64,000 nt of DNA. Origin: Adineta vaga. Lineage: Eukaryota > Animalia > Rotifera. The DNA lies in contig CP075494.1 in NCBI GenBank assembly GCA_021613535.1, positions 6,944,001 to 7,008,000 of the forward strand. Direction: 5' to 3'. The notes beneath the pieces were generated by a model, which worked only from the letters and a program-made list of their open reading frames with translations, ran no database searches and was not told the origin of the DNA. Both the position numbers and the translations under genes were made by a program. Of the stretch, positions 3,019 to 22,181 are shown piece after piece; positions within the stretch are counted from its first letter, which is position 1; every line of letters begins with the position of its first letter.

Positions 3019-4580
3019 ATTGTTTCAAAACACCATGACTATGTTTCTTTGTTGAAACATATGGTAGAGGTTTGACAAACGACAACTACGTTGAATATTT
3101 CTAATTTAATTAATAGAAATAAATAGAAAATATTTGGAAATTCTTCAAATCTTACACACAAATTCATCTATTTTAATTATTCATGCAGATGTCACTATCT
3201 AACAGATTCATACATATAGTTGACACGTCACAATCCTTTAAATGATGATTATATTTTAATATTTATACATACAGGTAGATAATAGAGAATGAGAAATTAT
3301 AATTTCAAACTATTGTGTAATTATCTCTTTTTCAACGACTAAAAATAGAAGTGGTGCTCAGGTAAAAACATTAAATGAATCTTTTCTAGCAAATATTCAA
3401 TAACGATATAGATCTCTAGTTGTTGTCAGAAAGAAGCACACGATATGAAATCTTTCATTTAATAATAAAATGACAAAAGAAGACTGATAAACACCGTTGG
3501 TCGTACCGTATATTCATAATGTTCCATATATCTTTGTAAAATAGATACGAAGACATAGATATCATTCTCAATTTTTGAGTGTATTGTAGAAATTATGTAA
3601 GATAATTTTTTCTTTTATCAAGCAAATCTGTCTTTGAAAAGATATATATTCGCTGACAAAGCGCATTCACAGAATATACTTTCTATTTAACATAACAAAG
3701 AAGAAATTTCTTTTACTTGTATAATTAAAAACATTTCAATATTTCTCATTATGTATGACGTTTTTTTTTCAAATCAAAACAAACAATACAGTGGTGACAG
3801 ACGAATCATTTTTTATACGCAAATTTATGAAAGAGTGATCATTTACATATCAGTTTCGATATATGACTAATTCCAATTATAAAGAATTGAAGAGAACAAG
3901 AAATATAAATATACATAGGTTCAAGTTAGATAATAGCTTGGATCTTTTCACTTTGTGTCTATAACTATGTATGATCGCAAACCTGATGAGTATCATTCCG
4001 TAGAAACATATGTGTGAAGATCTGATATCTTGATTAAAATCAATGTTAACTTTAGATACAGAAGCTTATAGTTCGTAGGCTTCATCTCATTACAAATATT
4101 ACTGTAAACATATGTTGTCTGTCATGGATCGTTAGTTATTGTAATCAAGAACGAATATATGTATATAATCTTCAATTAATTATAGAACGATAAAAATCAA
4201 AACTCAACGCAAACATTGAATCAACTCTATATCTAAATGAATGCAATAAACTGGACAAACATTTTTTATTGTTTATTAATAGAACACTTAAAGTGATATA
4301 TTATTGTTATTGATTGTTAGTTTCCTTACATCACTATGTAATCAAAGAAGTTTTATTGTAAAAAATTTCGTTAGTTTTGAAGTAAGTAACAAAAAGAGTA
4401 AGAAATCAATAATGTTATAATCAGACAGAAAACTTACTGGAAAATGACAGAATAGAATAAAAAGCAATAATATGTTTTAGTTTTTCGTTGATCCTAGCTA
4501 TGAGAAACGCGTTTGAAATAAGTAGAAAAGAGGAAAAAAAACGAAATTCTAGATTGTTCATCGTTGTGTCGAGAGGCAAT

Positions 4581-5304
4581 TTATTGACTATTGCCAGGGT
4601 TGTATTCTTTTCTTGATGAATTATCTACAATAAAAATATGGTCAATATTTTCGATCAAATCAATTCATATGTGACTATCTTACTTGCTCGAGCGGATTTA
4701 TCGATTGTTGAATGAAATTTATGAACTATAGGACTAATAAGTCGATTAAACAACACATGAGAACCGCCTTTTGGTCCTGGAACCATTAACCAGATAAGAA
4801 ATAGACATTTACCAAGCCAATAGAATGGTAATGTATGAAAGAAATTGTGTCCAACATACTCAATAATACCGCATACAGCATAGACAACCCAATAGATTAA
4901 CCATTCTGTATCATCACGAGTACCTTTGGACTCGACAGCTAATACTCTATATCAATAAAAAAATAATCAATTTATTTTTCGTCATAAATTTCAAATGAAG
5001 CATCTATACTAACGAAGCATAAGCTGGATAAATGAATCCGATAAGATTACAAATAAAATCATTGGCCCAACCAAATGATAAATAAACAGCCAAAAGACCA
5101 AGTAAACCTATAATTATATGAAAAACAACAAAGAAATGATAAATACAATAAATATAGGACAGCAATACCTAAAGCAACGTGTTCACGTTTAACTTTTGCT
5201 TTTTGTTCCAGAAGACCCCAATATGAAGTAAATGGACCTTCGTATAAGTATGGTTTAATTTTGTTTTCAATCTTACGAATATAAGGTTGGATTGCAGCCG
5301 CCAT
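4581..5304 (-). CDS. REEP5: REEP5/DP1/Yop1 (TB2/DP1/HVA22 family) ER-shaping protein
   Basis: Spliced ...ICNLIGFIYPAYAS/VLAVESKGTRDDTEWLIYWVVYA...LPFYWLGKCLFLIWLM motif; 4 exons. Confidence 0.92.
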
Positions 5305-6285
5305 TTCTGAAAACCTTGAAATGAAAGGCCAAAGTGCAGGTTAACCAAAAAAAACAGCAAGGAAGAAAAGAAAATAATATTGGATTCTATTGGCCGAATA
5401 AGTAAACCATTGTAGAAACCTGAAGAAGAAATGCATATTTATCATAACTCGTGATGGAGCTAGAGGGTGGTCTGCTCTCCTTATCGAAAAGAAATATAGC
5501 CACCAAATAGAATATTTTCTAACTTCATTTCATGAATGTATATAGATAATCGATGATATGCCTCAATATACAATGCTTATCAATTTCAAATTATCTGTTG
5601 GCAGGATATGAGTATTCAGTAGGAAAATTGATCCCCAACTAAATAATGTTTTAAAATATTATCTTTAGATGAAAATCGCTTAGGAATTAGAAATTGAGTA
5701 AAAAATGGCAATTCTTTTCTATATTAGAGGATTTTACTTAGTCTTTCAGTATCGAATCATAGAAGAAGATAATGATGAATTATCATCATATAGTGTCCAA
5801 CATCTCTATCATTTCACTACATCAACAAGTAATAAAATATGTATCAAATCACAACGAAAAAATCGCTTCCATGATAAGGATCAAATATGTATATTGTTAT
5901 CATCAGATTATATTTAAAAAAAATAACATTTCAATAATATTTATTACCTTTTGTTAGCATATGTTGACAGCGATCTCTATAGTTAAAAATTTTATCAATG
6001 GTCTTATAATAATAACCAATGCAAACAGAGAAATCTATATATAAGACAGACAAGAGAGGTTTATTTTATTTTATTTTTCGTTTCACATTGAATTTAGAAA
6101 GATTATAGATAATTGATATAAAATCATTCTTTCATCAAAAATATATAGGTAGTGACGCAGATGTTTTTTTCTTAGATGGACTATCTAATCGTTCGAGACA
6201 TAGTATAAAAATAGTTTCTTTTCTCTTGTCTAATTTGAAAATTGATGATAGAAATAAATGCTTTTTTCTCTCATATCTATTTTAG

Positions 6286-6989
6286 ATGGTGAGTGAAAGT
6301 AAAAGTATTGTGAAATTCTTATACATATTATTTCTATTATTCTTAGCTACCATTGACACTTCTTCGAACTGCTGTGTTTCATCCTATGGTAAGGAATTGA
6401 TTGAAATAAATTTTTGTTCTGTATCTATTTATTTTATATGTCAATAGTTGGTTGAACTTAAAAATGGTGAAACATACAATGGAAATTTGGTTAGTTGTGA
6501 CAATTTTATGAATATTCATTTACGTGATGTTATTTGTACGTCTCGAGTAAGTTTCTAGTTTTTCGTTGTTTAACATAGATTTTATGTTCAATATGAAGGA
6601 TGGTGATCGATTTTGGAAAATTCCTGAATGTTATGTACGTGGTAATACAATCAAATATCTTCGATTACCTGAAGATATTCTTGGACTAGTCAAAGAAGAT
6701 ATAAATGAGAAACCATCACGTTCAGGACCACCTTCACGTCGTCCATTCCGTGGTCGTGGTGATGGTGGACGTGGAGGTAAAATCAATTTGACTGACAAAG
6801 TTCAAATAATCATACTAACAAACTAATATGATTTTATTTTTAGGACATACTGGTCGACCTGGAGGATCCGGTGACCATCGTAAAGGAGGTGGTGGTGGTG
6901 GTGGTGGTGGTAATCGTGGTGGACATCAAGGATCACGTGGAGGTGGTCGTGGTGGTCAACAAGGTGGACAATTTCGTCAAGGACGATAA
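6286..6989 (+). CDS. LSM4: U6 snRNA-associated Sm-like protein LSm4
   Basis: [70 protein letters not shown] plus RGG-rich tail. Confidence 0.96.
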
Positions 6990-7718
6990 TATACAGCAAC
7001 AATGATATTGAACAAAGTTTATCACAAGGAAATCAATACTACCTAGTCCAGATGAACAACTTGTGACATTTCTCAACTAATTTCAAACGTTGCTTGTCTA
7101 TTATTTTTTTTTCTAAAATTAAATCATTGTAAAGAGATATAATCACTTTAAACATTTGCTTGTCAATCGATTCAGATACTTGTTTCGACATTATATTACA
7201 AAACAAAATTTTCAAAATAGTTTTCTTTTACTACAAAAAAGATTATCATATCGTCAAATTATATTTTTGAAACTAATATATAAAGAAAAAGTTTATTTAT
7301 GTATTCAATTCAGAATTGTAACATTGATGAAATAGAATATAGAAAATATCCTCAAGAAAACTCAACTCAAACCAATCACGTTCAATAAACAAATAATAAC
7401 GCCATCTTCATTCTCCTATTGGTCCTTTACAACCTTGTTTTTTCTTTATTTTCTACATAATAAAATGATATTCAAATAACACAAGCATTCGGCAATATCA
7501 TACATAAAATAGTCTCATGATGCTATGTATCAGGTGATCTAGATCGTTTGTATGTATAACCATTACTTTATATGCAACGTCATATCAACAAAAGACATTC
7601 TTTCGTTTTGTGTCTATGTATATACGCACACACATGATTTCTATCGTTCTTCATTTGTCCTTCGTATATAATGTGTATTCGTTTTTCTAGATTAACTACT
7701 ATTAGAGATAAAGATATC

Positions 7719-8364
7719 ATGTCTTCGGCACCAAATCCTACCACAACAACGACAACGACAGCTCAGCGTCGTTTGATGCGTGATTTACGTGATTTAACAC
7801 AAAATCCCGTTGATGGTATTAATGCTGCGCCAATTAGTACCGATAATATTTTTCAATGGAATGCAATACTTGATGGACCAGATGATAGTCTATTTGAAGA
7901 TGCAAGTTTTGTTTTAACACTTAAATTTCCACAAGATTATCCAAATCATCCACCTGATGTGAAATTTGTTACAAAAGTTTTTCATCCAAATATATGTGAG
8001 TTTGATGATGCAAATTGATTTATAATTTCGTTCTTTTTTTTCTTCCTATCTAGATATGGATGGATCAATTTGTTTGGATATTTTACAGCAACGTTGGAGT
8101 GCAAGTTTAGATGTTTCTACATTATTAGTTTCTATCCGTTCATTATTAACTGATCCAAATCCTGCTTCACCAGCCAATTCGGAAGCAGCAATGCTTTATC
8201 AAAATCATCGTCGTGATTATGAACGGCGTGTACGTGAATATATCGATCAACAAATCATGGAAGATGAAGATAATGATGAAAAGGATGATGGAAAATCAGC
8301 TACAGATAAAAAGCATAATATAACTATGACAACAACAACATCCCCACAACCTCCTTCTGCCTAG
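7719..8364 (+). CDS. Ubiquitin-conjugating enzyme E2, Rad6/UBE2A-B-like, with acidic tail
   Basis: [28 protein letters not shown] (catalytic Cys), [12 protein letters not shown]; one intron at about 7996-8053. Confidence 0.88.
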
Positions 8365-8607: not shown

Positions 8608-11600
8608 TTATGTTTCTATTCGGAGATTTACTGTAGGATAGAATGAGAAAAGATTTTGAATGAGAAGATTTTGAATTTGTTCGATGAGAATTTGAGAAAT
8701 TGTAAGTTGAATTTCAGTTTGAGTATCAGAACGATTAATTTTAATTAAATGTTTATCGATTGTTCTTCCAATGGTAATATTTTGATAATCAAGTCGTTCA
8801 TAAAATAATGAATGTAGACAAATTAAGAGCTTTTCGTAGAAACCAACAGGGAGAAAATTTCCATTTCCATTTAAGATTTTTAAGATTTGAATTGGATCTG
8901 AACTGAGAATTTGAGAATTTGATGTATCAATTTCATTGATCGATGGTAATTCATCGATTTGAATTTGATTTTGTTCATTCATTGATGAATTTTGTTTTGT
9001 TTCTTCAATTAAATTTACATTTGGAATATGTGCTTGTCGAATATCTGTTGCAAACCATAATTGTTGTTGTTTTATTTTTCGTGTTCGTTCACATTTTAGA
9101 TGTTCATAGATTCGATTTTGTTCGAGTAGTTTAAAATATTCATTCGAATCGATATCTTCGGATTTTTCACTCGTTAACCACGGACAAACAAAACTAAGTG
9201 TTGAAAATTCTTGATCTAAAACAAAGAATAAGAGAATAGGATTGAGAATGTTTTAGAAGTTCCTACAATCTAAATTTGATTCATTGACATAGCCAAGATA
9301 TAGACATTCCATTAATCGACAATATTCAATAATAGTTTCATCTTTTAACGTTTCTTCACCAGTATTTTGTTCATTGAATAGAATATGAAGCATTTTCCAT
9401 GTATATTCTCCACGTATTAGCAAACGATCACGATCGATTTGAAATAATTCTTCTGTTGGATAATAACCACCGAAACGAAATATCATATTTTCTTCATAGT
9501 CTAACCATTGATCAAGACGAGGACGAAATATAGTACGAGAAAATATATTATTCAGAAGATAGTAAGGTTTAATTAGGATAATCATTTGAGTACCTTGATT
9601 AAAACAAACAATATCACCCGTCATTTTTAAATAATCAAGACATTCATCAAATGTCATTTGATCGATTTCATTTTCAACTAATTCATTCTTTGCCTCTTCA
9701 TCTTCGTCTTCTTCTTCGTCTGTTTGAATTTGAGAGAATTCTTGAATTTCCGATTCATATTCTGATGATTCAGATAAGGTTCCATTACTTTTCTGAAAAC
9801 GTTTGAAACATGTTTCATAATCAATTGTTAATAGATCTTGTCCAAGAAATCCTAAACGTCGTTTTAAAGCTTGACATTTTTCTTTATGATGAATAATATT
9901 CCACTGTTGAGCAATAATTTCAAATGTTCCAATGACATTTGATATATCATTATTATCTAAATAGATCGGTTCAGGAAATAATTCTGAATATAAAGTTATA
10001 TTCGTTCGTTGATTTTCTTCATCTGTTAAGAACATATTAACTTTCGAATGGATTTCTTCGAGTAATTGTTGTTTTTGATCATTCGATCCTATTTGACAAT
10101 CTTTAAGAAAACCGACAATAGCAATAGCTGCTTGTGAACAATGATCAGATATAGATTCAATATAACGAAATAGATGAATATATAACCATTCATTTGTTAG
10201 TAATGCATCGTAATCAATAATTGGAATATTATTCTCATTTCTAGAAGTATGAAAAAGAAAATATGATAAGAAAGAAATAATGACAATATGTCATACTCAT
10301 CGTTGTTTTCTGCAAGAATTTTTGATTCGATAATATTTAATAGATTCGTTAAATTAACAGGAAGAATGAATAGAGCATTTGGATCGTAGAGTAATGGATT
10401 TAATATTTCCAAACTAGGATCATTTGTCAGATCAAAGATTGTACATGAAAGATTATTTTTTGTCATTAATGTCGATTTATTCAAATAGATTTCGAAGAAA
10501 TCTTTTGATCGATATGTTTGTAGAGGAGGTGGATAGTATCGTTTCGTTTTTTCAGTTCGAGTAAGAAAATTATCACTATTTGTTGATATTCGTTTTTGAA
10601 TTCGTTGTAAAGGAAATACAGTTGATCCATGTTCACTCGAAAGATGTTGACTATTTTCTTCAATCATATCCATTTGTTTATCTTGTAATAATGAGACATA
10701 CATATCCACTGTTTTTCGTGTATTTGAAATCATTTTATGATTATTAATAAGTTTAATTGTAAATGTTGTTTTACCAATACTTTTCGGTCCGAGAAGAATT
10801 AATTTCATATGATAGAAATTATTTGAAAGAAGTTTTTCTTTTGTTTCCATATAATCAAATAATGTTTGAACATTAGTTGTTTTCCATACAAAACTTGGAG
10901 GATCTTGAATCGTATTTCCAGATAGATGAAGACCAATACGTTGAAATCGATCATCGAATGTATGCATTGATTTTAGATTAATCATTTGACGAATTGATAA
11001 TGGAAGTGATGTTAATTGATTACATCGTAAATCAAGTGTTTCGATTTGTTTTAGATAACAAATTTCATCGGAAAGAAATGTTAATTTATTATATGAAAGA
11101 TCCAATGTTGTTAATGATTCACTTTGTGATAAACCATTTTCAATTTTATCAATTTGATTATGACTAATAATGAACTTTTTCAATGTTGAAATATGAGTAA
11201 TACAACTAGGTAAATGAGTAAAATTATTATTTGTTAAGATGAGTATTTCTAATTGTTTAATTTTAAGGAAATGATCTGGTATTTGTTCAAGACGATTATG
11301 TGACATATCAAGAAATTTTAATTGATTCATCGTAGCAATTGCTTCAGGTATTTCAGTAAAGGAATTATGTGCTAAATATAATTGATTAAGATTTAATAAA
11401 GTTTGTTCATTTGGAATAAAATTTAATTTTGTATAATTTAAATCTAATGTTAATAGACCTTCAAGTTCAAAGATTACTTGTGGTATATGTTCGGAACGAA
11501 TTTTTCCTTCATCGATTAATTCTAACATGTAATTATCGAGTAAACGATAGAATGTTTTAAAATTTATATTAAATTGATATAATTGACGACATTCAACTAA

Positions 11601-12579
11601 TGTTTCAGGTAGTGTATCAATTGGATTACCAGTTAAATCAATGGTTTGAAGTTTATCACAGAAACCAATTTCTGGTGGTAGTGTATCAAGATCCATTTGA
11701 GATAAACGAAGATGTCGAATATCTGCTAGATTACCTGAAAAAAAAAGAAAGCAATGTATCATTTCGAAGAAATTGTTCATCAATGCCCGGACAACTTACC
11801 AATATCACCAACGATATATCCAACTTTATTTCGACTTATATCAAGTGTTTCAATACTAATTGTATTCCATACAGCAATAGGAATATGTTTCATGGTACAT
11901 TCTGCCATGATTAATGTATGAAGATTCTTCAAAGAATTAAATTCACGTGGAATACATGAATAATCATCAATACCATTTTTGACACGTAAAGGATTACGTG
12001 AAATATCCAGATATTCAAGATTGACTAATGAACGAATGGCAGGTGGTAAACTTGATATATTATTATTGGATAAAATTAATCGACGAAGTGTTACGACTAC
12101 AAATAAAATTCAAGACTGAACAAAAGAACAAGTAGTTTATACATACGATCAAAGATTTCTGTTGGTATAATTGAAAGACCATTAGAAGTAAGATCTTGTC
12201 TTTCGGAAGTATTTGGTTCAACTATTTCTCGACTATCGGAATCAGCAGTAATACTTTTTTTGCTTTTCAATCCGCCTTTTCGAGTCAAAGATGGTGATTT
12301 CACTTTTGGTGAGGTTGATGTTGGAGTTTTAGCATTGGATCCCGATTTCTTTAATTTTGCTGATGTTGGATTCGTTGTTCGATTTACTTTCGAACTAGCA
12401 GAGCGTTTAATTGATGTTGCTTCTCGACTGTTTTGTTTTGATGTATGTGAAGATGTTTTTGCTCGTTGTGGACGTTCGTTATTAGCACTCATATTTGGTT
12501 GTGTTCGAGATGGTGAACGACTCTTTATTCCTTGTCGGTCACTGGGAGACCAACTTGTTCGACGATTGTTATTAAACAT
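8608..12579 (-). CDS. Roco-family protein (low-complexity N-terminus, LRRs, Roc GTPase-like domain, COR), MFHAS1/MASL1-like architecture
   Basis: Many LxxLxLxxNxL repeats, followed by MKLILLGPKSIGKTT (P-loop) and COR-like motifs CLDYLKMTGDIVCF, FCVPWL and FLPVGFYEKL; no kinase domain. Confidence 0.8.
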
Positions 12580-12910: not shown

Positions 12911-13688
12911 ATGATCTCGTCAATAAACTAGAATTTCTTGAAAAGTCAATCAGAGAATGATATTTGCCGTTTCTTTGATGATCAGAAGAAGATGTTAGAT
13001 AATGCGAAGAAACAAAGACTCGTCGAAATTAACAGCTGGGAGAAAGAAACCATTCGACAAATTCAAAAATATACTTCTAAACAAAGTAGCCTACTCCAAA
13101 ATGAGTATGATTCTCAGTTACATATTTGGAAAAGTAGACGTCAAGCATTTCATAAGATATTAGATGTTCATGAGCAGAATCGAAATATCAGTCAAATTTC
13201 TGAATTGCTTAATCAATGTCGCTCTTTGAAATTTGAATTAAGTGCAATTGGCTATTCGGATCAAAATATTCCATTTATTCTGTTGAGATATAACAATGCA
13301 GCCACGAATGTAAATCAAAATGAAACTAGTTCATATCGAAACGAAGTTGCTCGATCACAAACTGAACATAGATATGAGAATAACGCTAAGAATTACACAG
13401 GATCAACGTTTGCCAATGTTCAACAAACAAAGTAATTGCTTACATTATGACACCTGTTGATCATTGACAAGATCTGTTGTCATTCTTTTTTCTAGTCTTC
13501 TCACAAGAACAACAACCAATGAAAATATAGATGGCTATTGCGACAGTAGATGCGATAATACGTACTGTGATGTTAACGATAATGATGAAAGTATGGACAA
13601 ATGTCCAACATGCTATATGATATATCCGTTACATATGACAAAAACGCAACGTCTCGAACATTTTACTGAACATTTCAATAACACTTAG
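12911..13688 (+). CDS. Coiled-coil + UBZ-type CCHH zinc-finger protein, copy A (in-frame TAG at codon 7 of the ATG-initiated frame)
   Basis: Two exons joined by a phase-2 intron (about 13432-13495); C-terminus MDKCPTCYMIYPLHMTKTQRLEHFTEHF; ATG ATC TCG TCA ATA AAC TAG precedes the long frame. Confidence 0.7.
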
Positions 13689-14051
13689 AATGCCAACAAT
13701 ACTCATTCATTTCAAAATATAACAATATTTGAAAAGAAAAAAGCTATTGTCCAAATCTTGTTTTTCCGCTGTTAAAATCATATTTTATTGTATACATCTT
13801 TTGTTAATAGAAAAGCTCTTCTTGCTACATATTCGTCATTGATAATGCTTACAATAAATAATGTCATTTTTATTACAAAATATACGGTTATTTTTAGATA
13901 TAAACTAGTTCTATCTTTGGATAGTTGTCATATGACATTATTTATTACATTAGTCTGCGACAATACAGCCATCAGGATTGTTCATTTTAGTTTGCAGATG
14001 TGTCTTTCATATATTTTAGATTTCATCGAAGTTTTTGTTTGTTTATTTGGA

Positions 14052-14797
14052 ATGGCAGGACTCTCAGTTTTTGGCTTTACGTTTTGGAGAAGTGCAGCAG
14101 AAAACGATCTTCGTGATTTATTTGAAAATTATAAATCTACATTAGATGATCAAAAACTTAAAACATCTAATCGTATAAGAAGATGGGCAGACGAACTTAT
14201 TCAAGATATCGAGAAACATGTATATAAACAACAATGTATTCTCGAAAGAGAATATGAGTCACAATTGTATTGTTTAGAAGAGAAACAAGATGATTTTGTT
14301 AATGCAATACGTACATGTGAGAAGGTCAATAATAACGAATCAGTTCAATCTTTACTTGAGATATGTCGTTCATTAACGTTTGAACTAAGTCATCTTGAAT
14401 ATCATCACCAATCTATCGAATTTATTAAACTCACTTCAAAAGAATCAGCGGATATAAATCAAAATCGTAATGATCCAGAAGAACTTCAAATTAGAAGTTC
14501 AAGAAAGAATCTTACAGAAGAGAACGATTATCAAATAAGAGATAGTTCGAGTGAATCTTCAGATGCATCTTTCAATATAACAACTACACAAATTTCGTAA
14601 TCTATTATACGAATCCATTTGCTCTTTATGAGAATTTTCTTTTGCTTCTTTATAGCCCTCAACGATTAACCAATTACAATAATCTAGCGGATGGTAGTAT
14701 ACCAGAAAAATGTCCTGCATGCTTCATGCTATTTCCATCAACTATGACTGTACATGAAGTAACAGAACATGTTCACGAACATTATTCGGATGATTAA
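14052..14797 (+). CDS. Coiled-coil + UBZ-type CCHH zinc-finger protein, copy B
   Basis: MAGLSVFG...ENDLRDLF...; phase-2 intron (about 14597-14655); C-terminus PEKCPACFMLFPSTMTVHEVTEHVHEHYSDD. Confidence 0.8.
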
Positions 14798-15509
14798 GAA
14801 TACAATTTCAAAGAAAATTTGATTGTCTAATAAATAAAGTTTCAATCGTTTTAAAATTAACTCTGAAAGCTTTCGTATTATATAGCATGCACTGTTTTAT
14901 AAAAGCATTAAAAAGAACTTGAATATATCGAAAGAAATTAGTAAGTATTTACATTCTTTTATGATGTAATATTTATTTAGACCTTGGTCTGTGGAAATAT
15001 TTTCGATTGATTTTCGTTTTAACAGAAGACCTTCTTTTCTCTAAATGAGTATTTTAAGGAGAAAGAAATTATTCATCTTAGAGCGTAAAGGCCGAATAAA
15101 ACACAAACAAATCACGATTCATATTTCATTCAATATACATTCAAAATCATTTCTTCTAAATCGATAATAGTATTTGATCATCGTACCTAGATTTCTAGAC
15201 GGGCATTTCGCAGCATAAAACCTACTGTCGATGAAAATAGTCATTATTGTTCTTTAAAGTGTTCGCTTGTCGATATGTTATTTGATTCATGCGATTTTCA
15301 ATCGATTCATGGCCATTTTTTTCTTCTTTCTCTTCTTCTTCCAAATCAAAAGCAATAGAAGTGAGTCAAGGTAAGAGTTATGATAGAAAAAAAATATTTA
15401 CTCTCCCCTCCCCGCGAAAATATGCATTTAGACTTTTTCTTTTTCTTTCCTTGTTTCTTTTCTATCAGAATATATTTAGCAGAATTGATTTCAGATCTTG
15501 AGATCGATC

Positions 15510-16221
15510 ATGGCCTTTTGCTCTGTCTATGAACAAACATCTGAATTATCACAATCAGAAATCGAGATTCGTCATTTTTTCAAACATTTAATAACAACAT
15601 TATGTCAGCAAAAATGGAAGATTATCGATCAAATAAGTGAATGGAGTAAAACATTGATTCGTCAAATACAAGATCATGTCAATGATCAACGAACTCATCT
15701 TGAACAAGTCTATGAACATAAAGTATCCTATCTCGATTCAATACGTGATCAATTTCTTAGTCGAGCTCTGATCTTCGAACAACATAATGATACAGAACAA
15801 ATGCAACAATTGATCAATCAATGTAATACTCTCAAATCTGATATAGCCTTACTAGTTTATATTGAAAGACCGATTACATCAATACAACTATTGACAGAAG
15901 AGCATCTATTACAATCATATCAACAGCCATGTATCGAACGAAGAACTGTTGATGAAGAATGCCAAACAGAAAATACGGACTTCAATTCGAAGTTAATCAA
16001 TACAATATCAGTAACGTAAGTTTCTCTCTTGATTCATTACATACAAGATGCTGTATGACTTTCTGCTTAGACAATCGCCACCAGTAACACAATCGGAAAG
16101 TAGCAGGACAATCCATGAAATTTTAATGGAAAAATGTCCTCTATGTTATATGATCTTTCCAAATAAGATGAATGCTGATGATCGAAATCTTCATATTAAT
16201 GAACATTATAGAGATGATTGA
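15510..16221 (+). CDS. Coiled-coil + UBZ-type CCHH zinc-finger protein, copy C
   Basis: MAFCSVYE...EIEIRHFF...; phase-2 intron 16016-16070; C-terminus MEKCPLCYMIFPNKMNADDRNLHINEHYRDD. Confidence 0.8.
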
Positions 16222-16535
16222 AATCTAGAAAGTATTCGTTAATAAATTTCATTTTGAAAGTAATAAGTGCTATTCACCATGATACTGTGTGCGTGCGTGT
16301 GTCAAAGAAGCTTATAGACCATGTGGATCAAATAAATACTCTGGTTAAGAAATAGTCGAATTCTGTTCTTTTTATGTGATATTTGCTCATAAATGATTTG
16401 ATTTTTTTTCTCATTCGTTGTTGTTGTCCTTTTCCCTCGAAGGTGTATGATTACATCGAATGAAAAAATATATTTATGAAGAAAAGAACAGAAGCATGTA
16501 ACGATAAAACGTAACATTTCAGATGGTTTTTGACA

Positions 16536-17135
16536 ATGTCAACTTGTCGATTATTTCATTCAGCGACAGAATTTCGTGATTTATTTGAACGTCACTCAAA
16601 GACATTACTGGATCAAAAATTGATGATGATTAATGAAATCGATGAATGGGGAAATAATCTCGTTCATCAAGTCGAACAAAATCTCACAAGACAAAAGAAA
16701 CTTGTTGAACATGAATATCAGTTACAATTAAATCATCTTCGTCAAAAACATCAAGAATATCTTGATACAGCATTCGTTTATGAAGAACAAAAAAATCGAG
16801 AAGAAATCCGTCTTTTACTTGAACAATGTCATACATTAAAACTACAATTAGGTTCATTTGATTATCCTGAACAGACGATTCCTTTTATTCAAATCCATCA
16901 AGAACAACAATCATTAAAAACTCATGCATCTAACGAACATTTAACGATTAATGAGGATTTGAGAAGAAATGATTATCAGAATCTACATACAAAAACATCT
17001 CCACCATCGACTAATCCAACATGTATGAATGATAATATGACTGAAAAGTGTCCAGCGTGTTCTATGATTTTTCCATTGTGTATGGGAGCAGACGAACGAT
17101 CACGACATGTAAATCAACATTTTGGAGACAGTTGA
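16536..17135 (+). CDS. Coiled-coil + UBZ-type CCHH zinc-finger protein, copy D (no CDS intron)
   Basis: Single ORF MSTCRLFHSATEFRDLF...TEKCPACSMIFPLCMGADERSRHVNQHFGDS. Confidence 0.82.
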   Translation: MSTCRLFHSATEFRDLFERHSKTLLDQKLMMINEIDEWGNNLVHQVEQNLTRQKKLVEHEYQLQLNHLRQKHQEYLDTAFVYEEQKNREEIRLLLEQCHTLKLQLGSFDYPEQTIPFIQIHQEQQSLKTHASNEHLTINEDLRRNDYQNLHTKTSPPSTNPTCMNDNMTEKCPACSMIFPLCMGADERSRHVNQHFGDS

Positions 17136-17662
17136 AAAACTAATACAAGGTCATTTCAATTCAAACACTTCGTTATTTAAATAGTTTTGTTATTCTTATA
17201 TTGCTATTAATATATTTCGTATGTTGTTCGTTCTACAAAGATGGTTCCATTCGTTTACAGGAATCATGTGAAATGTAATACGTCTTGAAGATAATAAACT
17301 ATGGGAAATATTAGTGAATGATTAAGACTTGTACATTTTTTGAGAAAAGATTTATAGAGAATATTTCTTATTTTCATCCCAACACAATGAAAGTTGATTG
17401 AACCACTATAATGCAAGAACGATTGTTTACCATTAGATAGAAGTGAGGAAAAGGTTTTTTCCTGCGTATATTTCTTTCTTTTCGACGTTTAATGCTACCT
17501 GAATATTACTGCGGTGTTTTTTTTCTTTTTTCATTCTTCAACAACAAGTTTTTTTTTAAACTACAAATATAGAGAATCGTAAGCATGTTTCTTTTTTATT
17601 TCGTCTTTCACAATATATATATATATATATTATTTTTACAAAAATTTCAGATTTTTTCTATC

Positions 17663-18404
17663 ATGAATTATTCAGTTCATGCCTCTCGACCATTATATAT
17701 TTCTAGAGGATCAACAGATCAAATTTACTCGATATTTACACAGCACGGTTATGAATTGTCAAATATAAGAAGAAGAATCGAACAGGAGATTGATGATTGG
17801 CGTATTGATTTTATACAACGAATAGACAATCATGTAACTGCACAAAAACAACTTGTACATAAAGCTTATGAAAATCAATGGAAATCTTTGTGTAATATGC
17901 GTGAACACTTTGTGGCAAGTTGTATTTATGAAGTGAAAGATGACATTACCGAAACTAGGCGACTACTGGATAAATGTAGAAATTTAAGTTTGAACTTAGC
18001 CAATTTGGAATATCCATCTCGCGAGAACTTATATATTGATGTTATACCAATAGAACCGAAAGAAGAAATCTACCATGAACAAGTAGATGTAAATAGGAAT
18101 AAAAGCAATGAATTAGGATCGAAAACAATGCCAATGGACGTGACTTCAGAATTACTAACTCCGTACTCGAAAGAATCGAAGTTTGTTTTCTTTTTTCATA
18201 ACGTCATCTTTGTCTATTCTTTGTTTTTTTTATAGTCTTTCATCAAATGCTCAGGCTACAACAACTTTCAACCGAACATATGATGCTAGTACAGGAGGCA
18301 CAAAACTTTACTCTGCAGAAGACAAGTGTCCACTATGTTTTATGATATTTCCACCGTATATGTCAGACAGTGAACGACAATTGCATGCACAAGAACACGT
18401 TTAA
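17663..18404 (+). CDS. Coiled-coil + UBZ-type CCHH zinc-finger protein, copy E
   Basis: MNYSVHASR...EIDDWRIDFIQRIDNH...; phase-2 intron 18181-18235; C-terminus EDKCPLCFMIFPPYMSDSERQLHAQEHV. Confidence 0.8.
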
Positions 18405-19022
18405 AATTTTTCACTCCAGTAGATTCTAAAGCTAGAACATAAACGTTGATTTATTGTATGATGAGATAGATAATCCTGACTTTCTGTTCTCGATCAATAT
18501 TAGAGATGGAAAGAATATTGATTTACACTCTTTCGTAATTATTTTTTATAAATAAAAACATAAAACACAAGTAAAATCTTTCTTTCAGATAATATATTTT
18601 TCATGCAGAAATTGGTATTGATTCTATTGCACTCTTCTTATCATTGGACTACGTTTGAAGTAAACATTTTACCGACATTTATTCGTATTGATATGGTATT
18701 CAAAAGAAAATGTAACAAAAAATAGCATGAAACAAGTTTTTGCGTTCTTATACATTTCAGAAATAATATATAACGACTTAGTCATCGTTGTCGTAAGGTT
18801 TCAGATGTATTGATGAAAGAAAGAAAAAAATCATTTCACGCACATTCATTCGCTTTCCTATGAATTATTTACCTCCCAGAATGTCATTTCTAAGATTTGA
18901 TTTTTAGCCAGAGTAAGATTTATTTTCTTTTTCTAGCCGATAAAAAATAAGCAAACATTCTAGCATATTAGAATAGAGCATTGTTTTAGATTATATTCAA
19001 CTATTTCTGTGGATATTACAGG

Positions 19023-19769
19023 ATGAAGACGGCAATAGATGAAATTAAAAAAATATGTAAAAGTCGCGTCGACGAATTGTCAAATGAAAAAAAGCAAAAA
19101 CTTAAAACAATTGAAATATGGGGTCGCGATCTCAAAGATAAAATCCACCGGCACATGGATGAAGAGGCAAAACGTCTTGAACAAGAGTTCACAAGTCAAA
19201 AAACGTCACTCGAAACAGTTGGAACTGAATTTATTCAAAGAATTAAAAATGTAGAAGAAAAGCAACCTAGAGAACACTTTGATGGTTTAATTGCAGAATA
19301 TAAGAAAATACAATTTAAACTAAACGATCTTGATATCATCAAACGTAAAATCGATTCTATTACTGTTATTTTGACAAATAAACAAAGGATGGAAGAAGAT
19401 CCAAATGTTAATAAATCTCCTCGAAACACATCAGCAAAAAATGAACAACGAACGGCTATCATAGACAATAATCATGTCAACGGAAATTCAGTATCGACAA
19501 TAGATAAACCATCAGGGTTAGTTTTAGAATATACATATTGAAGAAATTTATAATTGTAATTATGTTTTATTTCAAGTCGACGCTCTTCAACGACTCAAAC
19601 TTCACCAGAATCCGACCGTTCAACTCGAATCGATAATAATACCAAATCGAATAGTAATTATGACAATGATATGCTGGATAGATGTCCGATTTGTTATATG
19701 ATCTTTCCAACAAATATGAACAGAAATGATCGAGATCAACATGCTAATGAACATTATGCTGATGATTGA
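19023..19769 (+). CDS. Coiled-coil + UBZ-type CCHH zinc-finger protein, copy F
   Basis: MKTAIDEIK...IEIWGRDLKDKIHRH...; phase-2 intron (about 19517-19576); C-terminus LDRCPICYMIFPTNMNRNDRDQHANEHYADD. Confidence 0.8.
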
Positions 19770-20142
19770 ATGATTTAAATTTAACGAAATAGTCCTTTGT
19801 TTCTTGTTTATACATATTTACTTTTGAACATGCTCGCATCTCATAATAGAAAAATATCAAAGATAATATATTAAAAATGAAGTCTTTTCTTTTAATTTAA
19901 GTAGAATGACAAGTTCGTTTTCGACGAAATTGATATTGATAGGAGATTATTGGTTGAAGGACTGAAGGTTCGTATTGACGAATCATAAGTTGCCATCACA
20001 CAATTCTTCTCTGTGACAACAGTAATTAATACTGAATTTTTATAATTAAAAAAGATATGTTAAGTTGAATAAATAATAATAATATTTTTCTTATTTATGA
20101 ACAAAAAAAATTTATTCTTTTATAAAACGACATCTAATGAAT

Positions 20143-20241: not shown

Positions 20242-22181
20242 ATGACATCAACAGAAACCAACGAGCAAATCACATTGAAAGGCGAAGATATTTCTCCTGA
20301 AAAAGATGGAGGTATATTTTTTTTCTAAATTATCTTGATCTTTTTCATAATAGTTTCTTTTCTATTAAAGGTGTTCTCAAAGAAATTATTAAAGAAGGTC
20401 ATGGTGATGAATGTGCATCAGCGAATGACAGAGTTACTGTGCATTATGTTGGTACATTACTTGATGGCACGAAATTCGATAGTAGTCGAGATCGTAATGA
20501 TAAATTTCAATTTAATCTTGGTAAGGGTGAAGTTATTAAAGCATGGGATATTGGTGTAGCAACAATGAAACGTGGAGAAATATGTCGATTGACATGTAAA
20601 CCAGAATATGCTTATGGTGAAAAAGGTTCTGGTGACAAAATTGGACCAAATGCTACATTAATTTTTGAAGTAGAACTTTTCGATTTTGTTGGTAAAGTTC
20701 CTTGTTATCTGTAAAGAATGAAATGATAATTTTTGTTTTTCTTCTTTTTTTTCTTCTAGGTGAAGATCTAAGTGATGATAAAGATCAAAGTATCATTCGA
20801 CGTACATTACGAAAAGGTGAAGGATGGGCTAAACCTAACGAGGATGCCAGTGTTGAAGTTATGCTCAAGGGCACTCATGATAATAAAGTATTCGATGAAC
20901 GAACTGTATCTTTTACTATCGGTGAGGGTTTTATTCATAACATTCCAGAAGGGTACGTAGTTGATTAATTAATCCATGTTTATTTTTCAACGAAATCTTT
21001 GCTTTGTTTTTCTTGTCTAGTGTTGAACATGCTCTAACTAAAATGACTAAAAATGAACTTGCTCGATTAACATTAAAATCTAAAGCAACAACTGGAGTAG
21101 AAAAATTTAACATTCCAAAGAATTCTACAGTTCAATATGATGTTACATTACTTAATTTTGAAAAAGTGCGTAATTTTAAAATAAAGGAAATTCTTAGAAA
21201 TTGTCTCTTCGGTTTTTCTTTGTTAGGCAAAAGATTCATGGCAATTGAGTGATGCAGAAAAACTTGAACAATGTGACGTTTTAAAGAAACGTGCTGCTGA
21301 ATTATTTAAAGTAAGAATCAAATAATTGGACTCATTTTTTGAATTCAAATTAAAAAAAAGTAGTTGTCTCTTGCATCGAATAATAACAGTAGTAGACGGT
21401 AAAATTGTATGTTTCTAATTAGGATTTCAGGTTTAGTGAACTTTTAAAATATCAATGAATCATTTCACCTGTGTCAAGAGGAGAGAATCGGATATAAGAA
21501 GAAAAACGACGGAAATGAAAAGTATTACATGAATTCACTCAGTTCTACTAGAGTGTAAATAGTTCCTTAATGCATTCAAACTTCTCTGCTGCATGAGGGA
21601 AGAAAAAGCGAAAGGAAATATGTTTTCCTATCTTAATTGATGCATTCATTTTCTTGCGCATATTTTAGGATGGTCATTATCGAGCTGCTATCAAAAAGTA
21701 CAGTACTATTGCTAGTTATTTGGAAGCTCCAAACTACTCTGAAGAAGAAGATAAAAAGAAAGCAGCAGATTTTAAATTAACTGCTCAATCAAACATTGCA
21801 TTATGTCATTTAAAATTAAATGAACATGCTGAATGTCTTCGTGCATGTGAAAAAGCTTTAGAATTAGATGCAAAGAATGAAAAATGTCTCTTTCGTCGTG
21901 GTCAATCACATTTAGCTATGTCAAACTATGAAGATGCATTGAAAGATTTTCAAGAAGTATTAAAACTTAATTCATCGAATAGTGCAGCAAAACAATCGAT
22001 TCAAACATGTCGAGATCAAATGAAAGCTTATCAACAGAAAGAAAAACAATTGTATGCCAATATCTTTGCTAAAATGGCTAAATCAAGTGAAAAAACTGAT
22101 GAACAAGCTTCAAATGGTGAATCAAAGACAAATGAAGAAAATAATAACAATAACGAAGAAACACCAACGACGACAAACTAA
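20242..22181 (+). CDS. FKBP4: FKBP52/51-type peptidyl-prolyl isomerase (two FKBP domains + TPR)
   Basis: [19 protein letters not shown]...[16 protein letters not shown]; second FKBP domain; TPR with KCLFRRG; [11 protein letters not shown] motif. Confidence 0.93.

Follow-up and report, generated by a model that had tools for sequence, protein, structure and literature searches.

Putative TRIM-type coiled coils with a terminal UBZ1-type finger, encoded by a tandem gene array of the bdelloid rotifer Adineta vaga: candidate bivalent ubiquitin readers

We analysed a stretch of 64,000 nucleotides of the bdelloid rotifer Adineta vaga (G000:C5:6944001-7008000, on chromosome-scale contig 5 of a 100.8 Mb genome in six contigs; this whole stretch is called the window below) and found that it contains, between 12.9 and 19.8 kb, a tandem array of six + strand genes (g1 to g6), each encoding a protein of 199-228 amino acids (aa). 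All six share one layout: an N-terminal helical domain (N-domain), a disordered linker rich in Ser, Thr and Asn, and a terminal zinc finger with the spacing C-x2-C-x15-H-x3-H. Sequence comparison assigns the finger to the UBZ1 type, of the TAX1BP1/CALCOCO kind, and the N-domain to the TRIM-type coiled coils, with homology to the coiled coil that accompanies B-boxes and an apparent loss of RING and B-box. The array family is an undescribed bdelloid variant of the known kind of protein in which a coiled coil is followed by a terminal ubiquitin-binding finger. The reading that we favour, and hold to be about evenly balanced between right and wrong, is that these ancient bdelloid paralogues act as bivalent ubiquitin-reading adaptors or scaffolds. 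An earlier note on this DNA, made from the sequence alone, had correctly placed six same-strand genes here, and had overestimated their size (up to 240 aa).

The finger and the coiled coil

We searched with the exons of the window singly and with the database protein entries P0007, P0008, P0009, P0015 and P0018. The aligned fingers of the six genes have an invariant C, P, C, M, M, H and H, and the four zinc ligands and their spacing are kept in 6 of 6 fingers and in 30 of 30 full-length relatives, along with CP-x-C and an F/Y-P after the knuckle. In a search of the whole genome the six fingers scored E-values of 5e-19 to 9e-16 against the family finger profile. From the PDB, the finger profile retrieved TAX1BP1 UBZ1+2 (E 3e-6; best stretch i-Evalue 6e-4), as did a profile of 30 full-length sequences (E 1e-5), and TAX1BP1 was also the best PDB sequence match of g4. 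The Pfam family PF18112 (Zn-C2H2_12, 'autophagy receptor zinc finger') gave sub-threshold matches in four of the six fingers (10.8-16.4 bits). The AlphaFold models of g4 and g6 predict a beta-beta-alpha fold for the finger (predicted local distance difference test, pLDDT, 88-94), and Foldseek searches with both models placed the ubiquitin complexes of the FAAP20 UBZ and of TAX1BP1 UBZ2 in the top rows (root-mean-square deviation, rmsd, 0.7-1.3 A); Foldseek E-values are non-significant for a domain of ~30 residues, and rank and rmsd alone were used. The assignment of the finger by the earlier note thus stood.

In the genome of A. vaga, the closest fingers outside the family are those of two ohnologous genes on the - strand, L029 (G000:C1:4001500-4005500) and L030 (G000:C4:10111500-10115500), which encode a SKICH domain, a long coiled coil and a terminal UBZ1 finger of the CPMCYW type, with a last intron in phase 0. 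The L030 finger lies above the PF18112 cut-off (25.5 bits), and the SKICH match has an E-value of 2e-4. These two are the real CALCOCO/TAX1BP1-like genes of the rotifer, and because it has such SKICH-coiled-coil-UBZ genes elsewhere, the six array genes are not CALCOCO orthologues. The array proteins resemble the selective-autophagy receptors of the CALCOCO family (TAX1BP1, NDP52/CALCOCO2, CALCOCO1) in having a coiled coil and then a UBZ1-type finger at the extreme C-terminus, with the profile match to TAX1BP1 given above and a fold that superposes at ~1 A rmsd. Unlike that family, they lack the SKICH domain (as the earlier note had anticipated) and the CALCOCO1-type coiled coil, in place of which they have the TRIM-type one; they carry one finger instead of two; and they have Arg for Phe three residues before the first His and mostly Ser or Thr for Glu or Asp two residues before it. 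The best structural superposition of the array finger is with the FAAP20 UBZ (rmsd 1.2-1.3 A), but FAAP20 binds zinc through CCHC ligands and possesses a D-A-L motif in its helix and a Trp tail at its C-terminus, none of which the array shows, and it belongs to a different family and pathway. A similar logic, in which a zinc finger that binds ubiquitin stands at the C-terminal end of a dimeric coiled coil, is found in NEMO, optineurin and ABIN; there, however, the finger is of the CCHC (NOA) type and ubiquitin is bound chiefly by the UBAN coiled coil, whereas the array ligands are CCHH. No sequence similarity between those proteins and the array was detected.

The six N-domains share an invariant W, L, E, L and I in the alignment, and in a search of the whole genome with the family profile each copy reached an E-value in the range of 3e-38 to 4e-47; given these values the shared N-terminal pattern, described already in the earlier note, is not a product of chance. 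AlphaFold models made from a 14-row alignment for g4 and a 30-row alignment for g6 agree in predicting a helical hairpin of ~110 residues (a first helix of ~80 residues, a turn of three and a second helix of 19-28; pLDDT 83-98), followed by the S/T/N-rich linker of 45-85 residues, which is acidic just before the finger and has a pLDDT <50. Averaged over the family alignment, hydrophobicity recurs with a period of 3.7 residues, more strongly than in any of 500 shuffles, and this fits an amphipathic coiled-coil helix. In Pfam, the N-domain exons and ten full-length relatives matched no family, with scattered sub-threshold coiled-coil-like noise, and there was no RING, B-box, SKICH or CC2-LZ/UBAN match in the six genes or the ten relatives. 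The N-terminal region is without a Cys/His cluster, and the proteins begin directly in the coiled coil.

The kinship of the N-domain became visible through its weakest match in the own genome, which led to a gene encoding a B-box, a coiled coil and NHL repeats; a nine-row N-domain profile matched this B-box-coiled-coil-NHL protein in hhalign at 78.6%. With 128 N-domains against 21 A. vaga B-box-coiled-coil exons the match reached a probability of 95.1% (E 3.3e-8, 94 columns, 19% identity) and spanned the entire coiled coil that follows the B-box. The controls that we regard as valid, reversal of the alignment (0.5%) and twenty column shuffles (≤0.9%), stayed far below this value; a circular shift was discarded as a control because it leaves the matching block contiguous. 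The hidden Markov model of the N-domain furthermore matches many B-box-coiled-coil proteins (23-34 bits), the best non-finger PDB match of the 30-sequence profile was a TRIM29 fragment (E 0.035), and language-model features lean weakly (0.76) to B-box clusters. Comparisons of shape were generic: VIA-align of the N-domain against 48,161 chains gave long-helix matches (Z ≤7.4), and the ESM Atlas search returned TNIP2 at the top, with CALCOCO and FAAP20 rows, all at a template-modelling score (TM) <0.5, which is suggestive only. The expectation of the earlier note, a BBC/TRIM-like coiled coil, is borne out by the hhalign comparison.

With TRIM and the bdelloid B-box-coiled-coil-NHL proteins the array proteins have in common an I-x2-W-x3-I-x2-I signature and a hairpin made of a long and a return helix; they differ in having no RING, B-box, C-terminal propeller or SPRY domain, in their small size (~200-230 aa) and in their C-terminal UBZ finger. 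The bdelloid B-box-coiled-coil family is a very large TRIM-like expansion without RING: a single B-box-coiled-coil exon finds 149 or more matches in the A. vaga genome. In one example (L002, 2819-4444) NHL repeats follow.

A profile search of 1.84 billion representatives with the N-domain recovered 177 proteins at E ≤0.001. Among the best 150 of these, all but one are 70-275 aa long with the domain near the N-terminus, the exception being a 428-aa protein that consists of two adjacent genes merged. About four fifths of the matches are listed without a finger and stop at ...Q-T-K. These finger-less database entries are truncated gene calls, since the ...Q-T-K end corresponds exactly to read-through of the phase-2 donor (AA|GTAA).

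Adineta has, in addition, a protein in which B-box, coiled coil and terminal CPMCYW finger are found together (A. ricciae P0181, 269 aa). The orthologous A. vaga locus, L028 (G000:C1:13210500-13214000; open reading frames 1194-1769 and 1852-2046), keeps the finger reading frame (CPMCYW...HIENHF), yet the annotated model (P0180, 201 aa) splices past it. The intron predicted at 1711-1879 of this locus is in phase 1, and the FAAP20-family Pfam matches at the fingers of L028 and L029 are weak (E 0.035-0.065). Like the array family, this small protein joins a TRIM-like coiled coil to a terminal UBZ1 finger; unlike the array family, it keeps the B-box, has a CPMCYW finger and is predicted to have its pre-finger intron in phase 1. 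The coiled coil and the finger therefore co-occur with the B-box still present, and it is possible that the protein is an intermediate form. We also considered two specific sources and rejected them. Acquisition of the finger by exon shuffling from a CALCOCO-like gene finds no support in the pre-finger introns, which are in phase 0 in the CALCOCO-like genes, in phase 1 in the B-box-coiled-coil-UBZ gene and in phase 2 in the array family, and the B-box-coiled-coil-UBZ gene is not favoured as the donor, as its coiled coil is no closer to the array family than that of other B-box genes.

Gene models, expression and age

The N-terminal open reading frame of each gene counts 165-190 codons, and in five of the six genes a second, short frame ends in K/R-C-P-x-C-x-M-[IL]-[FY]-P-x2-M-x7-H-x3-H. 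For each such pair a single GT..AG intron of bdelloid size (55-64 nt) gives the join, and all five introns are in phase 2 ahead of the finger exon, in keeping with what the earlier note had described. In each of the two-exon genes, exon 1 encodes the N-domain and linker and exon 2 the finger. The first gene, g1 (P0018, 210 aa), has exon 1 at 12992..13431 with the annotated ATG at 12992, a predicted GT..AG intron of 64 nt at 13432..13495, and exon 2 at 13496..13688, which holds the end of the linker and the finger (a 33-aa stretch at 13587-13685). For g2 (P0007, 228 aa) the exons are 14052..14596 and 14656..14797 (finger 14696-14794), separated by a 59-nt intron at 14597..14655; for g3 (P0008, 218 aa) they are 15510..16015 and 16071..16221 (finger 16120-16218), with a 55-nt intron at 16016..16070. 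The fourth gene, g4 (P0001, 199 aa), is a single exon at 16536..17135 with its finger at 17034-17132. The g5 gene (P0009, 228 aa; locus tag I4U23_024110) consists of 17663..18180 and 18236..18404 (finger 18303-18401) around a 55-nt intron at 18181..18235, and g6 (P0015, 228 aa; I4U23_024111) of 19023..19516 and 19577..19769 (finger 19668-19766) around a 60-nt intron at 19517..19576.

The 5' end of g1 deserves a separate remark, as the array had been taken to start at 12911. The ATG at this position is closed by an in-frame TAG at 12929, and because of this stop the start of g1 should lie later or be unconventional. The conserved frame is open back to 12932, and a conserved N-terminal motif (~12941-12991) stands in frame upstream of the annotated ATG; judged from the sequence, this region could be a small upstream reading frame, or could reflect a lost start or a non-AUG start.

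We then compared positions 13780-19779 (6,000 letters, comprising g2-g6) with transcript contigs taken from four runs, each of a different study. Coverage falls on the exons of g2-g6 and is missing from the spacers (e.g. 14780-15380), and the contigs therefore represent RNA. They skip exactly 16016-16070, 18181-18235 and 19517-19576 in 4 of 4 runs, and the g2 intron 14597-14655 in one run, by a contig with a T>C variant at 14595. The genes g2-g6 are thus expressed, and four of the five introns are confirmed by spliced contigs. The 32 coding variants listed comprise 17 synonymous and 15 non-synonymous ones over 660 and 2,655 sites, respectively, which gives a ratio of non-synonymous to synonymous polymorphism (pN/pS) of ~0.22; the list is partial, with 18 further rows outside it. 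The array is under purifying selection. Transcript contigs of two of the four runs carry a 21-nt in-frame insertion after 16089, in exon 2 of g3; alleles or strains probably differ in the linker at this point. One run also skips a 54-nt GT..AG intron at 18535-18588, which lies in the 3' untranslated region of g5.

All named relatives of the family are bdelloid (Adineta vaga, A. ricciae, A. steineri, Rotaria socialis, R. sordida and Rotaria sp. Silwood1), the ESM Atlas clusters of relatives carry the label 'Rotifera', and by sequence the family appears, so far, in bdelloid rotifers only. On a 299-kb contig of a GC-richer bdelloid species (L003; GC 44%) five N-domain + finger units are found, and the order E2 (UQ_con), LRR/Roc-like gene, array, FKBP is common to this contig and contig 5 of A. 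vaga. In the window the upstream neighbours are the E2 gene (7671-8364, + strand) and the LRR/Roc-like gene (9253..12579, - strand), and the downstream neighbour is an exon of the FKBP-type gene (20439..20714, + strand). On the ohnologous contig 2 of A. vaga three more copies of the family adjoin the LRR paralogue, with three fingers on the - strand (L001, G000:C2:12801000-12810999, 3687-6464). One of these copies is intact (P0110), one has its N-domain split over two frames, and in the third the N-domain is apparently shortened internally (reading frame 5306-5479); one paralogue on contig 2 is GenBank UJR28506.1.

A maximum-likelihood tree built from 22 N-domains places g3 beside the first half of R. 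sordida P0005 (support 95/90) and copy 3 of the L003 species, g4 beside the second half of P0005 (90/83), and g5 beside R. socialis P0049 and copy 4 of the L003 species (96/97). The partner of g1 is an A. steineri protein and that of g2 an A. ricciae protein; the contig-2 copies make up a clade of their own, and g6 sits unplaced on a long branch. The duplications that gave rise to g3, g4 and g5, and at least part of the gene order, thus predate the split of Adineta and Rotaria. When the six paralogues are compared with one another, the finger averages 46% identity, the N-domain 26% and the linker 17%, and together with the Rotaria orthologues this supports the old duplications and the well-kept finger that the earlier note had proposed.

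That note had also recognised no named family here, and this holds in part. The public homologues are uncharacterised proteins, and we found no paper linking UBZ and bdelloid, nor a UBZ, TAX1BP1 or CALCOCO term in the supplements of two A. vaga/Adineta transcriptome papers. However, some UniRef entries have been named automatically 'UBZ1-type domain-containing protein', and the g5 protein P0009 carries a precomputed Pfam accession, PF27641, for which neither the Pfam copy used here nor the papers searched contain an entry.

Ubiquitin as candidate ligand and the competing explanations

TRIM coiled coils form elongated antiparallel dimers. By analogy of fold and kinship, the coiled coil of the array proteins would dimerise in the same manner; each dimer would hold two fingers on flexible tethers, the fingers would read ubiquitin (mono-ubiquitin or chains) with avidity, and the role of these small proteins would be that of bivalent adaptors or scaffolds, their diverged coiled coils giving each paralogue its own partner or preventing cross-pairing. 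As to the ligand itself, we consider the odds for ubiquitin about even. The kinship of the finger with the UBZ1 fingers speaks in its favour. In a complex prediction of the g4 finger with zinc and A. vaga ubiquitin (L004:1495-1722) the score was 0.36 versus 0.03 for the best control, the runs agreed in ≥88% of the contacts with a partner pLDDT ≥72, and the tool rated this as 'weak support'. In the calibration of the tool, 51 of 78 solved complexes came up to its mark, as did 2 of 108 mismatched pairs, and the passes at ≤0.60 comprised 5 of the 78 solved complexes and all 4 of the mismatches that passed.

Several observations weigh against ubiquitin. Judged by that same calibration, a pass of this kind misleads in most cases, except where the pairing had been likely from the start, and it may derive from the model's memory of solved UBZ-ubiquitin complexes. 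None of the six fingers reaches the gathering cut-off of PF18112 (23.2 bits), two of them being unreported at E up to 1, and the relatives of the family score 18 bits at most, likewise below it. In TAX1BP1 the double substitution Q770A/E774K abolishes polyubiquitin binding (PMC4599966), and in FAAP20 the residues D164, A168 and L171 make the ubiquitin contact (PMC4267625). The acid that TAX1BP1 UBZ2 (E774) and FAAP20 (D164) need for binding stands two residues before the first His. In the array family this position is mostly Ser or Thr; among the six genes only g6 has an acid there (L in g1, T in g2, N in g3, S in g4, Q in g5 and D in g6), and among 30 relatives 4 have one. The D-A-L motif of FAAP20 is not kept. 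The Phe that CALCOCO fingers have three residues before the first His is a nearly invariant Arg in the array family; the rotifer's own CALCOCO-like fingers (L029, L030) are also without this Phe and have Lys there. Finally, TAX1BP1 UBZ1 binds ubiquitin weakly (70 uM) and also serves in myosin VI binding (PMC4599966), so that a UBZ1 fold is no guarantee of a ubiquitin reader. We also noted by eye [FY]-x-x-[IV] matches, resembling the LC3/ATG8 motif, scattered near the acidic pre-finger stretch in the g1 clade; they are not kept throughout the family.

A set of surface residues of the finger is nearly invariant (M, [DE]-R, N-E and Y/F), and since R, N-E and Y/F are so well kept, the sequences argue that all paralogues share one ligand, whatever its nature. 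This brings us to the explanation that the finger is a protein-protein module for something other than ubiquitin, or that the proteins act mainly through their coiled coil: as relatives without a B-box they would pair or compete with the 149 or more B-box-coiled-coil proteins, and in this way would regulate these or connect them to a ligand of the finger. It accommodates the missing acid, the conserved but different surface, the binding of TAX1BP1 fingers to myosin VI as well (PMC4599966), the homology of the coiled coil with the B-box-coiled-coil family and the Adineta B-box-coiled-coil-UBZ protein, in which the two modules work in one chain. Yet the similarity in hhalign is a distant one, from which cross-pairing does not follow, and the ubiquitin complex test was passed, if weakly, with controls that stayed at or below 0.03; on balance we regard this explanation as rather unlikely. 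The array proteins could also be UBZ proteins of the DNA-damage response (of the FAAP20, Pol eta, RAD18 and WRNIP1 kind) that ubiquitinated PCNA or chromatin recruits, a role that would bear on the tolerance of bdelloids to radiation and desiccation. The FAAP20 UBZ is indeed the top structural row for both models, and the linkers of the contig-2 clade have basic R/K clusters that could be nuclear localisation signals, but the kinship in sequence is to TAX1BP1/CALCOCO fingers and not to FAAP20, the FAAP20-family Pfam matches fall only outside the family (L028, L029), and the array fingers do not have the D-A-L motif that marks the FAAP20/Pol eta helix. The supplements of the A. vaga desiccation/irradiation study do not contain UBZ, UBZ1, TAX1BP1, CALCOCO or Chrom_5, although their gene identifiers cannot be mapped, so that absence of the genes is not implied. 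A role of this kind seems very unlikely to us. Least probable by far is that the finger is a nucleic-acid-binding C2H2 finger or that the array is decaying duplicated DNA, an idea that is already largely refuted by expression and conservation: classical C2H2 fingers do turn up in the lower rows of the Foldseek searches, the ancestral start region of g1 is lost and one contig-2 copy looks internally deleted, but the distance from C to H is 15 residues and not the classical 12, the finger is single and at the extreme C-terminus, g2-g6 are all transcribed and correctly spliced, pN/pS is low, and orthologues are kept across bdelloid genera.

The reading as bivalent ubiquitin-reading adaptors can be extended to a bdelloid invention, in which a stripped TRIM coiled coil was combined with a CALCOCO finger and about nine bivalent readers form the adaptor layer in a system of surveillance or quality control that is based on ubiquitin and as yet undescribed. 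These readers would plug into the B-box-coiled-coil repertoire of the rotifers or work in parallel to it, and their binding might depend on phosphorylation of the Ser/Thr that replaces the usual ubiquitin-contacting acid. We think that so broad a scenario is quite unlikely to be correct in full.

A minimal version of a known kind of adaptor

Coiled-coil proteins with a terminal ubiquitin-binding finger are central adaptors of vertebrate selective autophagy and NF-kB signalling, and to our knowledge their diversity in other animals is barely charted. Here, a stress-tolerant lineage with large TRIM-like expansions has built a minimal version out of two recognisable parts, and some nine diverged copies have been kept since before the bdelloid genera split. 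Should ubiquitin not be the ligand of the fingers, the nearly invariant Arg/Asn/Glu/aromatic surface would mark a UBZ1 finger that was re-tooled for another one. Should the fingers bind it, these proteins of 200 aa would be unusually simple and tractable models of bivalent ubiquitin reading, and they would offer an entry point to the role of the bdelloid B-box-coiled-coil expansion.

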